Below the pieces are notes generated by a model, which ran no database searches, was not told the origin of the DNA, and was given only the letters and a program-made list of their open reading frames with translations. Positions 306 to 7,112 of a stretch of DNA of 64,000 nt are shown piece after piece. Both the position numbers and the translations under genes were made by a program. Within the stretch, counting starts at the first letter, position 1. Each line of letters starts with the position of its first letter. The stretch is from Octopus sinensis (lineage: Eukaryota), in the NCBI RefSeq assembly GCF_006345805.1, contig NC_043002.1, positions 34,968,001-35,032,000 of the forward strand. The letters run 5' to 3'.

Positions 306-397
306 CGCCCGCAGAGGGACTTGAACCCGCGACCCTCAGATTTCATAACTAGACAGTTCTAAAAAGTCTGATGCTCTACCGACTGAGCTATGCGGGC
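306..397 (-). tRNA. tRNA-Lys-TTT: tRNA-Lys(UUU) copy 1 with 19-nt intron (342-360); A37T variant, possibly defective
   Basis: Minus strand reads GCCCGCATAGCTCAGTCGGTAGAGCATCAGACTTTTT[AGAACTGTCTAGTTATGAA]ATCTGAGGGTCGCGGGTTCAAGTCCCTCTGCGGGCG. A and B boxes are intact, the acceptor stem is 7/7, and a T5 terminator lies just downstream. Position 37 is T rather than A. Confidence 0.85.
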
Positions 398-1578
398 TTC
401 CGTCCGTTCAGTTTAACTTTTAGACAAATGAAATATTATGGACTTAGCTAGACATTCCTTGTTAACTGAAACGATTGTTGTATAAAGCTGTCATCTGATA
501 TCTTACGTCACCCCGTAGTGATTACTAATAATTCCTTCACATTTACTACTGATATTTAATATAGTAATTCGTTCACTCATCAAGTCCCATCCTGGTAAAG
601 TCATACTTGTCATACAAAATGTATATACACTACTCTCTTTCAATTATAATCATAACAATGTTCTCCACCAAATTAAATGGCTTAAAATATTTCTATAATA
701 ATTTGTACTAGATGAAGGACCAATTTTGTAAAGTAAACTGTATTAAACACACAGACACACACACAAAAACACAGACACACACAGACACACACACACACAC
801 ACACACACACACATGCACACAAACAGTACTACACATATGTACATATACATAAATATTAATAATCTTTCATCCAGATTCTCCAACGCACATCAGCACAGGA
901 ATCAAACACTGGATTGAAAGATTTATACAGTGGTATAAATGTCAACACAATTATTTCTTCTTCTTCTCTTTCTTCTATCTTCCTTCTCCAGCGACAACCC
1001 TTCCAGATACACAGGCATCCACACACACATGTGCACACACACGTGCACACACACACACACACACACACACACACACACAAAACAATGACAAAAAGAAATC
1101 CAGACAATTTTTGGAGAAGTGACATTTTGTCCCCCTTGAAGTGGCCAATTGAGTTTGCCATTTCTAAAAGCCAAGTGTCACTTACCATTGAAAGACTGAC
1201 TAGCTGCAAAGATATCAACAAATTTTTTCTTCTTTCTCTCCTTCTTCCTTTCCTTCTCTTTTCTTTAACACACCTTTAAGATACAAAAACACACATGATC
1301 TCTCTCTCTCACGTTCTCCCCATTCTTCACCCTCTTGTAGTATCTTATCTCTCCCCGCCCCTACACACACAATAATGCTATAAAAGGAGACAAAATTCCT
1401 GCAAAAGTTCAATTTGAAAACTCCACTAGAGTGGAGCAAAGCGCTTTTATATGATATATGATTCATAAAAAATGTAACATACTAATAAATATCTGTAAGT
1501 ATAAAACCATCCAGCAAATATAAAACCAACCAGTCAATTGGACATTTCTTCTGCGACAATTTCCAAAAGAAAAATCGT

Positions 1579-1670
1579 CGCCCGCAGAGGGACTTGAACC
1601 CGCGACCCTCAGATTTCATAACGCAGCAGTTCTTAAAAGTCTGATGCTCTACCGACTGAGCTATGCGGGC
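1579..1670 (-). tRNA. tRNA-Lys-TTT: tRNA-Lys(UUU) copy 2 with 19-nt intron (1615-1633); best candidate functional gene
   Basis: Cloverleaf with TCAGA-CT-TTT-A-[AGAACTGCTGCGTTATGAA]-A-TCTGA, acceptor GCCCGCA/TGCGGGC, discriminator G and downstream TTTTTCTTTT terminator. Closely resembles canonical metazoan Lys-TTT. Confidence 0.93.
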
Positions 1671-3166
1671 TTCCATCCGTTCAGTTTAACTTTTAGACAA
1701 ATGAAATATTATGGACTTAGCTAGACATTCCTTGTTAACTGAAACGATTGTTGTATAACGCTGTCATCTGATATCTTATGTCACCCCGTAGTGATTACTA
1801 ATAATTCCTTCACATTTACTACTGATATTTAATATAGTAATTCGTTCACTCATCAAGTCCCATCCTGGTAAAGTCATACTTGTCATACAAAATGTATATA
1901 CACTACTCTCTTTCAATTATAATCATAACAATGTTCTCCACCAAATTAAATGGCTTAAATTATTTCTATAATAATTTGTACTAGATGAAGGACCAATTTT
2001 GTAAAGTAAACTGTATTAAACACATACACACACACACACAGACACACAGGCACACACAGACACACACACACACACACACGCACACAAACAGTCCTACACA
2101 TATGTACATATACATAAATATTAATAATCTTTCATCCAGATTCTCCAACGCATATCAGCACAGGAATCAAACACTGGATTGAAAGATTTATACAGTGGTA
2201 TAAATGTCAACACAATTATTTCTTCTTCTTCTCTTTCTTCTATCTTCCTTCTCCAGCGACAACCCTTCCAGATACACAGGCACCCACACACACATGTGCA
2301 CACACACACACACACACACATGTGCACACACACACGTGCACACATAGATGTGCACACATACATGTGCACACACACACACACACACACAAAACAATGATAA
2401 AAAGAAATCCAGACAATTTTTTGAGGAGTGACATTTTGCCCCCCTTGAAGTGGTCAGTTGAGTTTGCCATTTCTAAAAGCCAAGAAATATTTTCTATTGA
2501 AAGACTCACCAGTTGTAAAAATGTAAACACATTTTTTCTTCTTTCTCTCCTCCTCCTTCCTTTCATTCCCTTTCCCATTTGACACCTTATTCAGATACAC
2601 AGACACCCACACACGCGCGCACACACACACACACACACACACACACACACACACACACGCACACACTCTCTCTCCCTCTCACAAGACAAGGATAAAAAAG
2701 AAATCCAGACAATTTTTTGAAAAGGGACATTTTGCTCCCCTTGGAGTGACCAGCTAGGTTTGCCATTTCTAAAAGCCAAGAATCCCTTACCATTGAAAGA
2801 CTGACCAGCTGCAAAGATATCAGTAAATTTTTCTTCTTTCTCTCCTCCTTCTTCTTCGTGTCCTCTTTTTCTTTAACACTTATTTAAGATACAAAAACAC
2901 ACGATCTCTCTCTCTCACTTTCTCCCCATTCTTCACCCTCTTGTAGTATCTTATATCTCTCCCCGATCCCCACACACTCAATAATACTATAAAAGGAGAC
3001 AAAATTCCTGCAAAAGTTCAATTGAAAACTCCAATAGAGTGGACGAAAGCCCTTTTATATGATATATGATCCATAAAAAATGTAGCATACTAATAAATAT
3101 CTGTAAATATAAAACCATCCAGCATATATAAAACCAACCAGTCAATTGGACCAAAAGAAAAATCGT

Positions 3167-3258
3167 CGCCCGCAGAGGGACTTGAACCCGCGACCCTCAG
3201 ATTTCATAACTCGGCATTTCTTAAAAGTCTGATGCTCTACCGACTGAGCTATGCGGGC
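3167..3258 (-). tRNA. tRNA-Lys-TTT: tRNA-Lys(UUU) copy 3 with 19-nt intron (3203-3221)
   Basis: Exons are identical to copy 2. Intron is AGAAATGCCGAGTTATGAA. T5 terminator present; the 5' flank is diverged. Confidence 0.93.
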
Positions 3259-3414
3259 TGACATGCGATTCAGCGAAAATTTAGATAGATTAAATCTTTT
3301 GAACTTAGCTACTATATACATACGTACAAACATACACCCAAACATACATACATACATATATACATACGTACATGCATACATTCATACATACATACATACA
3401 CAAACAATACTCAG

Positions 3415-3455
3415 ATGAAATCTGAGGGTCGCGGGTTCAAATCCCTCTGCAGGCG
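3415..3455 (+). pseudogene. Inverted tRNA-Lys 3' half (last 5 intron nt plus 3' exon)
   Basis: Reads atgaa-atctgagggtcgcgggttcaaatccctctgcaggcg. Its downstream flank 3456-3590 matches the reverse complement of ~6888-7020. Confidence 0.85.
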
Positions 3456-5131: not shown

Positions 5132-5330
5132 CCTTTCTACTGTAGGTATAAGACACAAAGTTTTGGGGTTTGTTCGAGGGTTGGGGTAGGTTAGTCGATT
5201 ACATCGACCCAAGTCCTCAACTGGTACTTACTTCATTGTCGGAATTTGAGTTCAGAACGTAGAACCGGGAGAAGCGTTACTAAGCATTTTGTTCGGCGTG
5301 CCAGTGATACTGCCAGTCCACCACAGCCTT
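5132..5330 (-). mobile_element. tRNA-derived SINE (family with Meta-like central domain)
   Basis: gtcgattacatcgacccaag...ctggtactt...gaatttgagttcagaacgta...gcattttgttcggcgtgcc; reverse match to 63626-63830. Confidence 0.6.
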
Positions 5331-5614
5331 ATGCGCCTTCCGAATGATAAGGGAATAAAAAAATCAACTCAAAAATATATATCATGATCATATATCATGT
5401 ATAATAATTGTCACATGCAGATGTTCCTTAAAAGGAATTATGTGAAAACAGGACATCGATTTCCATTTCCATTTTCCATCCCAATAAATAAATTATATTT
5501 CACACATCTTAAGTCATAACTCTTTAATTTCTTTTTCATTTATTTATAGAATTGTCAATATTTTGTAAGACTACTGCGACATGATTACTGACAAAGTTAC
5601 ACTGAGTCTTAAAA

Positions 5615-5910
5615 ACTCCCTTCGGTCACGAATGACCAAGAAGGTTCCTCTCCGAGTCACAAGTCCGGGCAAGGTTGTTTGTCGAATACCAGTCAGTCCT
5701 TTCCACAACGCTGATGTTGTCCAAGAAAACGACAAAGGCCGATTCAGTTTGGCAACAGTAATGTCGCAAATTATTTCTACTGCTAAGTGAACTGGAGCAA
5801 TATGAAATGAAGTGTCTTGCTCAGAAACACAACTCATAGTCCGGTCTAGGAATCGAACTTACAACATCACGATTGTAAGCCCAATGTTCTAACCACTGAG
5901 CCATGCATCT
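5615..5910 (-). mobile_element. tRNA-derived SINE with CORE-like domain
   Basis: tRNA-like head (ggctcagtggttagaac...gttcgattcc) followed by gagcaagacacttcatttca; related to 17165-17462. Confidence 0.65.
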
Positions 5911-6082
5911 TCACAAAAGGTCATCGTAAAGCCACAACGGAGAATCGAACTTTGTATCTCTCAAATTATCTTGAAAACACCTAATAATTTATAAACATCT
6001 AATGTTAAAGTGGAAAAATTATCAGAACATATTTCTATTCAGTTTTGCAAATATAGAATACTGTACGATTGACTATTTGTTT

Positions 6083-6184
6083 TACTACTACTACTACTAC
6101 TACTACTACTACTACTACTACTACTACTACTACTACTACTACTACTACTACTACTACTACTACTACTACTACTACTACTACTAC
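6083..6184. repeat. (TAC)n microsatellite, ~34 units
   Basis: Direct reading. Confidence 0.95.
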
Positions 6185-7020
6185 ACTACACACACACGCA
6201 CGTGTATGAACATATATATATATATATATATATATATATATATATATATATATATATATATTCAATAATTAAGGGTAAAATCAATTAGTTATTAATTAAT
6301 TTCACCAACTATTTCTCAGTATGTAAAAACCATTCAAGGCGTATTCAAAATATTTCACGTGGATGGGAGGGGAAGGTACATAGATTCTTTACTTGCACTG
6401 TTTGAATTCGCTGGCACTATCAGTTTGGAGGTGTTCGTCTGAGGTGATTCATGTCGGATGAATATGTTCATTATTTTTAGTGCTTTCAAATCCAAACAAG
6501 AAATGTTGAGCTGACGAAAGAAATGTCGAGTTTTAATTCGGCTAATCTAGAAACGTTGAACGTTCTCAAATAATCTTTGTACTTGTGATATTTTGTTGTT
6601 TTCCTCAATGTCTACGTGAGTTATTTTTGAGTAAGCACTTTCAGGGAGATTCTTCTTAAAGTAGTAGAAATGGCTAAACAAAAATTTTTTGGCTGCTATT
6701 TCTAAAAATTTCATTATGTGGCAAAGTAAATTATTTTACTAAGCCCTTAATTATATAAATGTATATATATATATATATATATATATATATATATATATAT
6801 ATATATATATATATATATATATATATATGAGAAAAAGAAGAAAAAGAAAAAAATGACGTACAGAAGTTGATTATTCATAGAAATTTAAATTCATGCAGAG
6901 AAATTCCTGCATACAGCTGTTTCCACACCTAATCAATTGAATTATGGAAATGTAAATTCCAATCTTTGAAACCAGTTTATTGGATATTTCTTCAGGGACA
7001 ACTTCCAAAAGAAAGTTCGT

Positions 7021-7112
7021 CGCCTGCAGAGGGACTTGAACCCGCGACCCTCAGATTTCATAACTCGACAGTTCTTAAAAGACTGATGCTCTACCGACTG
7101 AGCTATGCGGGC
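7021..7112 (-). tRNA. tRNA-Lys-TTT: tRNA-Lys(UUU) copy with 19-nt intron (7057-7075); A31T and G69A, probable pseudogene
   Basis: Same layout, with an anticodon-stem T31.T39 mismatch and an acceptor C4.A69 mismatch. Intron is AGAACTGTCGAGTTATGAA. Confidence 0.75.

Follow-up and report, generated by a model that had tools for sequence, protein, structure and literature searches.

Candidate tRNA genes

Exactly five tRNA genes were found by ARAGORN and by the Rfam model RF00005 in the window (the whole 64-kb stretch of DNA that was analysed), all of them on the minus strand and each 92 nt long. All five are tRNA-Lys(UUU) genes, located at positions 306..397 (copy 1), 1579..1670 (copy 2), 3167..3258 (copy 3), 4323..4414 (copy 4) and 7021..7112 (copy 5), and thus the five full copies listed by an earlier sequence-only reading, which gave no strand, are recovered by both programs. 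The Rfam scores are 58, 59, 59, 52 and 50.3 bits for copies 1 to 5, respectively, versus a gathering score of 29, and model positions 1-71 are all matched in each copy. With at most three mismatches allowed, the 37-nt 5' exon occurs five times and the 36-nt 3' exon six times; none are expected from shuffled sequences. Copy 2 has the consensus exons (no mismatches in either), copy 3 has the same exons as copy 2, copy 1 has one mismatch in the 5' exon, and copy 4 has two in the 3' exon. The diagnostic bases of the cluster are C6:G67, G49:C65 and C50.U64, the last being a T-stem mismatch common to all five copies.

The sixth match to the 3' exon, at 3420-3455 on the plus strand, belongs to the half copy that had also been reported earlier (3415..3455). 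It consists of the last five intron bases (ATGAA, 3415-3419) and the whole 3' exon with two mismatches. It is inverted relative to the five genes, and a (CATA)n microsatellite truncates it on the 5' side. Positions 3467-3589, its 3' flank, match positions 6888-7010, the corresponding flank of copy 5, in inverted orientation with 88% identity. This half copy is a pseudogene fragment derived at the DNA level from an intron-bearing gene.

The A box TAGCTCAGTCGG and the B box GGTTCAAGTCC are intact, as read from the alignment; copy 4 has GGTTCAAATCC. A TATA-like motif T[CG]TAAA is present at -27/-26 in all five copies (TCTAAA at -27 in copy 1). The genes are followed by T-run terminators: T5 starting at +7 in copy 1 (295-299), T5 at +5 in copies 2 (1570-1574) and 3 (3158-3162), T7 at +5 in copy 4 (4312-4318), and a run of only four T at +11 in copy 5 (7007-7010).

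Introns and splice signals

The claim that each copy carries a 19-nt insertion exactly between positions 37 and 38 is confirmed. In the Rfam alignment all five copies have a single insertion of 20-22 nt directly after the anticodon loop, and ARAGORN in the intron mode (-i) calls copies 2 and 3 tRNA-Lys(ttt) i(38,19). The candidate introns, all on the minus strand, are located at 342-360 (copy 1), 1615-1633 (copy 2, AGAACTGCTGCGTTATGAA), 3203-3221 (copy 3, AGAAATGCCGAGTTATGAA), 4359-4377 (copy 4) and 7057-7075 (copy 5). Since A residues flank both cut sites, the intron boundaries may be shifted by one base; the mature tRNA is the same whichever of the two positions is used. The first four and the last eight bases of the intron are invariant in the five copies, and the centre is variable.

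All five copies have C32 opposite G at intron position -3, forming the proximal, or anticodon-intron, pair. The stretch C32-U33-U34-U35-U36-A37 provides six nucleotides up to the 5' cut, with U37 in place of A37 in copy 1. Residues A(-2), A(-1) and A38 are able to form a 3-nt bulge between the C32:G and A31:U39 pairs. A C-G proximal pair, a 3-nt bulge at the 3' cut and the six-base spacing are reported for all 16 intronic tRNAs of Drosophila (PMC6614914). However, in the minimum free energy fold with the cloverleaf enforced, U33-A37 pair with the 3' end of the intron and the A residues of the bulge pair with U33-U35, and thus the 3' cut falls within a helix, outside the bulge. No compensatory changes that would support the small intron hairpin were found.

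State of individual copies

Substitutions that look damaging are absent from only two of the five copies, and these copies, 2 and 3, are apparently intact and look functional. In copy 1, A37U gives rise to an internal T5 run, and this copy is thus probably impaired. Copy 4 has G51U, which creates a second mismatch in the T stem, and G59A in the T loop; Rfam marks two non-canonical T-stem pairs, and the gene is possibly impaired. In copy 5, A31U disrupts the 31:39 pair of the anticodon stem and G69A the 4:69 pair of the acceptor stem, with extra non-canonical pairs in the Rfam alignment; this copy is probably impaired as well. The harmful-looking substitutions in copies 1, 4 and 5 suggest that this is a birth-and-death cluster.

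Flanks and duplication history

A conserved block of approximately 225-245 nt precedes the genes at 398..640 (copy 1), 1671-1915 (copy 2), 4415-4660 (copy 4) and 7113-7320 (copy 5), on the minus strand as are the genes. In copy 3 the block is limited to its proximal part of approximately 52 nt, the sequence beyond about -52 being different. Pairwise divergence within the block is 1.3-16%; the most diverged unit is that of copy 5, whose upstream flank differs by 15-16% from the other copies. The 3' flanks are of two unrelated types, and the points where the 5'- and 3'-flank types are exchanged coincide with the tRNA genes.

The duplicated region covers positions 1..7320, as seen from repeat families D4, D5, D7-D12 and D14 and from the alignment. 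Copies 1, 2 and 3 lie in tandem units of approximately 1.27-1.6 kb, the fifth unit is diverged, and a duplication on a larger scale, approximately 4 kb, is seen in the resemblance of 1-603 to 3970-4620. These patterns indicate that the cluster was built up by tandem and segmental duplications, with the tRNA genes as sites of recombination. Hence the proposal of an intron-bearing tRNA-Lys(UUU) family amplified by local duplication agrees with the repeats, the alignment, Rfam and ARAGORN, with the qualification that only two of the five copies look undamaged. The surrounding DNA is rich in repeats and microsatellites, and no other genes were detected in it within the 64-kb window.

The pairwise divergence of the exons is 3.4%, versus 9.9% over 225 nt of the upstream flank. 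Segregating sites number 5/73 in the exons versus 41/224 in the upstream flank (Fisher p=0.024), and copies 2 and 3 have 0/73 differences in the exons versus 18/52 in the proximal upstream region (p=1.8e-8). The flanks have thus been changing approximately three times as fast as the exons, and gene conversion could mimic a part of this difference.

Relatives in environmental DNA

Intron-bearing tRNA-Lys(UUU) genes were found on at least 120 contigs in one metagenome scan (loci L001-L120, e.g. L092, L104, L098 and L115), the search pattern demanding identity at 25 bases of the exons around the anticodon loop. In at least 79 of these environmental genes the exons are of animal type and a Pol III terminator follows, and all of these have G at -3. 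Some of these genes adjoin a gene for a p27-type CDK inhibitor, an LRRNT/LRR protein or U3 snoRNA.

Among the matches listed, G at -3 is present in all 101 distinct introns; in the set with animal-type exons it is found in 61/61 genes, and a T-run terminator in 60 of the 61. The introns of the listed genes are located at 37/38, most start with AG, the mode of their length is 19-20 nt, and the Rfam scores of the genes are 52-62 bits. The T-stem mismatch C50.U64 of the cluster recurs in three independent environmental genes (L092, L116 and L117), and the reverse U.C in eight more of the 61, again among the matches listed. The intron of L104 starts with AGAACTGTCG, as does that of copy 5. On the other hand, no listed locus has exons identical to those of the cluster: the minimum is five differences, and in most genes the remaining exon positions differ from the cluster consensus at 5-9 sites. 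The cluster has C6:G67, unlike the environmental genes, and the intron cores also differ.

The suggestion that the intron is rare or specific to one lineage is therefore only half right: it agrees with the published placement of animal tRNA introns, but the environmental genes do not bear it out. The intron in tRNA-Lys(UUU) is real but fairly ordinary, as it is common in environmental DNA, including contigs with animal-type genes.

Comparison with known intron-bearing tRNAs

Introns of animal tRNAs have been placed in tY(GUA), tI(UAU), tL(CAA) as well as tR(UCU) (PMC4536317, PMC6614914, PMC12168002), in agreement with the concentration in Tyr, Ile, Leu-CAA and Arg-UCU assumed at the outset for well-studied animals; Lys-UUU is not among the intron-rich metazoan tRNAs listed by surveys based on GtRNAdb. 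Animal intronic tRNAs are acted on by TSEN and RtcB and give rise to tricRNAs (PMC4536317, PMC6614914, PMC12168002). The cluster resembles them in the 37/38 position of the intron, the C32:G pair, the six bases up to the 5' cut, the intron length of about 20 nt, and the organisation of a Pol III gene with a T-run terminator. The 3-nt bulge at the boundary between intron and 3' exon in animal intronic tRNAs is possible by sequence in the cluster. The difference is in the isoacceptor, Lys-UUU, for which splicing is predicted and intron circles might be formed. We know of no intron-dependent modification of tRNA-Lys(UUU).

The tK(UUU) of S. cerevisiae is one of ten intron-containing tRNA species of yeast (PMC6582322). 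It is the same isoacceptor with the same 37/38 intron position, and in yeast the intron is carried by the whole tK(UUU) family; however, its exon and intron sequences are unrelated to those of the cluster. In yeast the intron exceeds that of the cluster by a few bases, and ligation in yeast proceeds by the Trl1/Tpt1 heal-and-seal pathway, not by RtcB. Removal of introns is reported to be non-lethal in yeast.

Interpretation and alternatives

The observations are best explained if the tRNA-Lys(UUU) genes are nuclear and transcribed by Pol III in an animal-like genome, the canonical 19-nt intron of each being located one base 3' of the anticodon; we regard this as quite likely. The position of the 5' cut would be measured by TSEN from the body of the mature tRNA, the 3' cut would be recognised in the 3-nt bulge of A(-2), A(-1) and A38 that the C32:G(-3) pair closes, and the exon halves would be joined by an RtcB-type ligase to produce a 73-nt tRNA. 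It is from the gene sequences that we infer transcription, splicing, ligation and the choice of active copies.

It is also conceivable, but unlikely, that the cluster is a decaying array of pseudogenes, whose ancestor acquired the T-stem mismatch and the 19-nt insertion and was then copied passively in segmental duplications, functional tRNA-Lys(UUU) being produced by other, possibly intronless, loci. C50.U64 in all copies, the further damaging-looking changes in three of the five, the truncated fragment and the repeat- and microsatellite-rich surroundings devoid of other detected genes would fit such decay. However, passive copying does not explain why the exons change at approximately one third of the rate of the flanks, with copies 2 and 3 identical in the exons despite 35% divergence upstream. 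It is also at odds with the invariance of the intron ends, which carry the splice signals, with the retention of the terminators and the -27 motif in all copies, and with the recurrence of the same mismatch, the 19-20 nt mode of intron length and G(-3) in many independent genes elsewhere.

Two further possibilities concern the nature of the copies. That each is the head of a SINE derived from tRNA-Lys, or of another retroposed tRNA-like repeat, is very improbable. Such SINEs have been described in cephalopods, and the window does contain SINE-like elements of tRNA origin at 5040-5110, 5790-5900, 4660-4756 and 7319-7415. Like the tRNA-derived SINEs of SINEBase (PMC3531059), the cluster has multiple tRNA-Lys-like copies in a repeat-rich genome. 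However, a SINE has a body unrelated to tRNA and a LINE-derived or A-rich tail 3' of its head, and is dispersed with target-site duplications, whereas the homology shared by the copies is mainly 5' of the tRNA, the 3' flanks are of two unrelated types, and the Pol III terminator follows immediately, 5-11 nt downstream. Moreover, the spacing and the structure of the flanks fit tandem DNA duplication, the cloverleaf is full-length (50-59 bits), and a retrocopy of a mature tRNA would have no intron. Finally, the 19 nt might not be an intron at all, the products being intact 92-nt tRNAs, either with an extended extra arm or of a suppressor-like type, as the anticodons tta and aag given by ARAGORN in the default mode would imply; this we consider hardly credible. 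The covariance model aligns 71 positions with the single insertion exactly at the intron site, the intron mode of ARAGORN yields Lys(ttt) i(38,19), and deletion of the 19 nt leaves a 73-nt sequence identical at 68 of 73 positions (93%) to what we take to be the human tRNA-Lys(UUU). The ARAGORN labels shift with single point substitutions, and 'Stop(tta)', 'Leu(aag)' and 'Ser(tga)' are artefacts of the non-intron mode or of point substitutions in the copies.

Given intron-bearing genes, we tentatively suggest as a possibility, with the balance somewhat against it, that the tRNA-Lys(UUU) intron represents a fifth, old and widespread animal family, at least in marine invertebrates, carried in this genome by essentially all functional tRNA-Lys(UUU) genes. 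Reading of AAA codons would in that case require splicing by TSEN and RtcB, and the intron might be kept for a modification of the anticodon loop that needs the precursor, as in Tyr, Ile and Leu-CAA. Such a family would have been overlooked because the surveys deal mostly with vertebrates, insects and nematodes.

As the mechanism is standard, nothing new in kind is implied. Recent surveys limit the introns of animal tRNAs to four tRNA species. The cluster and its more than 100 environmental relatives make Lys-UUU a further intron-bearing tRNA in genomes beyond the usual model animals. If genome-wide counts demonstrate that the intron is fixed in this isoacceptor, the list of animal tRNAs dependent on splicing would grow, tRNA-Lys(UUU) would become a candidate for intron-dependent modification, and its intron would provide a naturally short, 19-nt substrate for studies of TSEN recognition and of circular introns.

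Structure of the tRNA-Lys(UUU) genes

The window contains five tRNA genes, found both by ARAGORN and by the Rfam tRNA model. They are located at 306-397, 1579-1670, 3167-3258, 4323-4414 and 7021-7112 (copies 1 to 5) and score 58, 59, 59, 52 and 50.3 bits, respectively, the Rfam gathering score being 29 bits. All five lie on the minus strand, a fact absent from the sequence-only reading. The 37-nt 5' exon occurs five times in the window and the 36-nt 3' exon six times, with zero occurrences expected by chance in both cases. The sixth 3' exon (3420-3455, plus strand, two mismatches) retains the final five intron bases, ATGAA, at 3415-3419. 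Therefore this half copy is a DNA-level truncation of an intron-bearing gene and not a retrocopy of a spliced tRNA. Thus ARAGORN, Rfam and the exon matches reproduce in every detail what had been observed from the sequence alone, that is, five copies, a half copy and the intron site. No RNA families other than tRNA reach the gathering threshold in the 64-kb window. In a permissive Rfam scan of the whole window, a further tRNA is absent from the best 150 of 188 matches; the additions are sub-threshold miRNA matches caused by microsatellites.

In the tRNA orientation, each copy consists of the 5' exon GCCCGCATAGCTCAGTCGGTAGAGCATCAGACTTTTA, an intron with the consensus AGAACTGCCGAGTTATGAA, and the 3' exon ATCTGAGGGTCGCGGGTTCAAGTCCCTCTGCGGGCG, all taken from the alignment of the copies. 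All 71 positions of the Rfam model are aligned, with one insertion immediately 3' of the anticodon loop. In the intron mode, ARAGORN assigns copies 2 and 3 to tRNA-Lys(ttt) and places an intron of 19 nt at 37/38. The labels Stop-tta and Leu-aag from its default run are artefacts of the no-intron mode, and Ser(tga), assigned to copy 1 in the intron mode, is an artefact of the A37U change in that copy.

The joined exons differ at 5/73 positions from what we take to be the human tRNA-Lys(UUU) sequence. Four of these differences sit in two maintained pairs, C6:G67 instead of G6.U67 and G49:C65 instead of C49:G65. Through the fifth, A50 to C, the T stem has a C50.U64 mismatch in every one of the five copies. 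Each gene contains an A box TAGCTCAGTCGG and a B box GGTTCAAGTCC, read by eye against the general Pol III consensus, and is preceded by the motif T[CG]TAAA at -27/-26. Runs of T begin 5-11 nt past the gene end (T5, T5, T5, T7 and T4 in copies 1 to 5).

All 16 intron-containing tRNAs of Drosophila have a C-G proximal (anticodon-intron) pair, an invariant bulge of 3 nt at the cut where intron and 3' exon meet, and six bases from the proximal pair's C up to the 5' exon's end (Schmidt et al. 2019, PMC6614914). C32 and G at intron position -3, counted back from the 3' cut, are present in all five window copies, and C32 through position 37 span six bases. The last two intron bases and A38 (A, A, A) could bulge between C32:G and A31:U39, but constrained folding prefers another pairing: in the thermodynamic fold with the cloverleaf enforced, U33-A37 are paired with the 3' end of the intron. 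Therefore the 3-nt bulge is possible rather than predicted. A 4-bp hairpin AACU/AGUU is predicted within the intron; no compensatory changes supporting it were found among the five copies.

Divergence of the copies

The exons of copies 2 and 3 are identical and coincide with the consensus. In copy 1, A37U removes the purine at position 37 and makes a T5 run within the gene, a possible internal terminator. In copy 4, G51U creates a second T-stem mismatch adjoining C50.U64, and there is an additional change, G59A. In copy 5, A31U and G69A break the 31:39 and 4:69 pairs, respectively. Judging by these changes, two copies look intact and three look impaired, the fragment standing besides.

The mean pairwise divergence over copies 1, 2, 4 and 5 is 3.4% in the exons, 13% in the intron and 9.9% in the 225 nt of shared upstream flank. 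Segregating sites constitute 5/73 exon positions versus 41/224 flank positions (Fisher p=0.024). The contrast is sharpest between copies 2 and 3, where differences number 0/73 in the exons, 3/19 in the intron and 18/52 in the proximal upstream region (p=1.8e-8 for exon versus flank). Intron variation in the five copies is confined to five central columns, the first four and the last eight bases being invariant. By our own arithmetic, twelve intron-end positions would stay unchanged at the copy-3 flank rate of 35% with probability about 0.006. Copies 2 and 3 differ in the intron centre but agree fully in the exons and the intron ends, so that recent conversion of the whole gene is unlikely to be the sole cause of exon identity. 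Purifying selection acting on the exons and the splice-site context would fit this pattern better than gene conversion alone.

The introns of copies 1 (342-360) and 2 (1615-1633) differ at 4/19 positions, all in the central loop, with only 3/225 differences in the upstream flank, and thus the intron core looks hypervariable. Perhaps it is a hot spot of CpG decay or of transcription-associated mutation.

Duplication architecture and repeats

Copies 1, 2 and 3 each belong to a tandemly repeated unit of about 1.27-1.6 kb. Bases 1-603 recur at 3970-4620, around copy 4, with 92-96% identity, and copy 5 belongs to the most diverged unit (15-16%). There are two types of 5' flank, A (copies 1, 2, 4, 5) and B (copy 3), and two types of 3' flank, X (copies 1, 4) and Y (copies 2, 3, 5 and the half copy). 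At the tRNA genes these types occur in different combinations, pointing to unequal recombination inside the genes. In the half copy, the 3' flank repeats that of copy 5 in inverted orientation. The tandem units, the 1-603/3970-4620 repeat and the flank types all support the earlier suggestion of amplification by local duplication.

Set against copies 1 and 2, copy 5 has an upstream flank broken up by a SINE-like element and a 240-nt palindrome. The latter (7500-7739) is near-perfect; its 116-nt arms, 97% complementary, enclose a spacer of 8 nt. Absent from copies 1 and 2, it looks like a hairpin-forming (MITE-like) insertion and accounts for the sub-threshold Rfam matches to mir-642 and mir-3688. 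The SINE-like repeat (…CTAGGCACAAGGCCCGACATTTTTGTGGAGGG…GTCGATTAGATCGACCCCAG…) was found at 4660-4756 and 7319-7415, and also at about 5140-5340 and 7433-7462. It occupies an equivalent site upstream of copies 4 and 5, and not of copies 1 and 2, which is odd, as copy 4 is otherwise far closer to copy 1. The repeat with ...TGTTTAGCCCCTTGTGGGTAATAAAGAAATA at about 7433-7462 presumably resembles the very abundant octopus SINE, which would agree with the earlier suggestion of a mollusc-like genome. Two tRNA-like heads with A- and B-box-like motifs (5040-5110 and 5790-5900, minus strand), called neither by ARAGORN nor by Rfam, probably belong to tRNA-derived SINEs as their heads.

At about 35% G+C, the window is very rich in microsatellites of the types (AC)n, (TA)n, (TAC)n and (CATA)n, e.g. 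at 720-830, 1020-1080, 6080-6260, 8200-9300, 28400-28900 and 36900-37300. Long spurious ORFs arise from them, as do most of the 188 Rfam matches below threshold, which are chiefly to miRNA families such as mir-297, mir-466 and mir-3149. Pfam analysis of six window ORFs yielded nothing real, ten window ORFs were absent from the protein collection, and stretches of sequence looked up literally in papers gave no match. A degraded non-LTR retrotransposon lies at about 24600-26900 on the minus strand, with reverse-transcriptase-like motifs …FVDSEKAFDRVP… and …FCYLGDLISSGG… in ORF fragments. No homologues of its degraded reverse-transcriptase ORF (24665-24997) were found by protein search, and no Pfam domains in the ORF fragments.

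Relatives in environmental sequences

A spurious ORF reading through copy 2, used as a query, retrieved another four tRNA-Lys(UUU) loci with introns; all belong to the environmental type, and none comes from the species of the window. A scan of metagenome contigs with the pattern GCATCAGACTTTTA, 8-38 bases, ATCTGAGGGTC, which excludes intronless genes by design, produced at least 132 matches on at least 120 contigs (individual loci are denoted by L and a number).

Animal-type exons (GCCCGGNTAGCTCAGTCGG... through ...GGGCG) are represented by at least 79 matches with 61 distinct introns, mostly with 5-9 exon differences from the window. Among the matches listed, these introns are 13 to 29 nt long (mode 19-20); G at -3 is present in 61/61, 46/61 begin with AG, and in 60/61 the gene is followed within 15 nt by a run of at least four T. 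Of the 61 genes listed, 11 have two mismatched pyrimidines at 50:64, and in three of these 11 (L092, L116 and L117) the T stem GCGGG/CCCTC is the same as in the window; hence this mismatch is not a mark of decay. The Rfam scores of the environmental genes, 52-62 bits, overlap those of the window. The intron of L104 starts with AGAACTGTCG, as does that of copy 5, too few bases to separate homology from convergence.

An ORF encoding a p27/Kip-type CDK inhibitor is found beside the intron-bearing tRNA-Lys(UUU) in L115, L089, L027, L051, L013 and L113. In L115 this ORF, which L089 and L027 carry in identical form, matches the Pfam domain CDI (4.2e-10), and its best solved structures are those of human CDKN1B. 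Where located, this gene is about 1-1.5 kb from the tRNA. The six contigs come from different samples, and their 19-20-nt introns vary from sample to sample. Related hosts have this linkage in common as a conserved feature. Other neighbours are an LRRNT plus LRR ORF (L038), a U3 snoRNA gene (L028, 152 bits) and intronless tRNA-Lys(CUU) genes (L098, L066). Together with the CDK inhibitor, they are evidence that the animal-type contigs are eukaryotic nuclear and partly animal. The Ga0056/Ga0126 contig series presumably derives from metagenomes of gutless-worm (annelid) hosts. L025 carries a GT92-domain ORF; a search with it yielded proteins and the assembly accession GCA_029979725.1.

The remaining matches, at least 50, have other exon types, and G at -3 is again present in all 40 distinct introns listed; some belong to tightly packed arrays of 16-21 tRNA genes. 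Such arrays in L037, L070 and L074 (Ga0206123, Ga0209634, Ga0115006; contigs up to 101 kb) occupy about 3-5 kb, include intron-bearing tRNA-Lys(UUU) and tRNA-Tyr, and are devoid of T-run terminators. They recall the tRNA islands seen in large viruses or some protists. L010 (OFDO01002803.1) is a 1.6-kb contig with 32% G+C that encodes a fragment of HisI and, in full length, an RsmH/MraW methyltransferase of bacterial type (1.1e-94). Its tRNA-Lys(UUU) at 1311-1357 (minus strand) has a 22-nt insertion at 37/38 and exons almost identical to what we take to be the human ones. Either the assembly is chimeric here or the contig is something unusual.

Nature of the cluster

Judging from sequence comparison, these are most likely genuine tRNA-Lys(UUU) genes, transcribed by Pol III and interrupted by a canonical intron of the TSEN type, in a cluster that evolves by birth and death. 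It could alternatively be a dead array consisting of pseudogenes only, which is rather improbable: the T-stem mismatch shared by all copies recurs in environmental genes, the exons diverge far less than the flanks, and those of copies 2 and 3 have remained identical. It is very unlikely that the copies are a SINE, as sequence shared by a SINE would lie 3' of the tRNA-like head and the local-duplication structure argues otherwise. That the 92 nt form a tRNA without an intron is hardly credible at all.

Thus intron-bearing tRNA-Lys(UUU) was the right identification, whereas the implied lineage-specific novelty is weakened by the environmental relatives. Decoding of AAA codons may depend on splicing, and the introns could form circles, in what was proposed to be a mollusc. 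In the literature searched, there is no description of an intron in an animal tRNA-Lys(UUU), molluscs, Lophotrochozoa and cephalopods included; GtRNAdb may list such an intron for some invertebrates. Taken as a cluster of genuine genes, it contradicts the textbook generalisation on tRNA introns for non-model animals, with an intron that would work by the standard mechanism.
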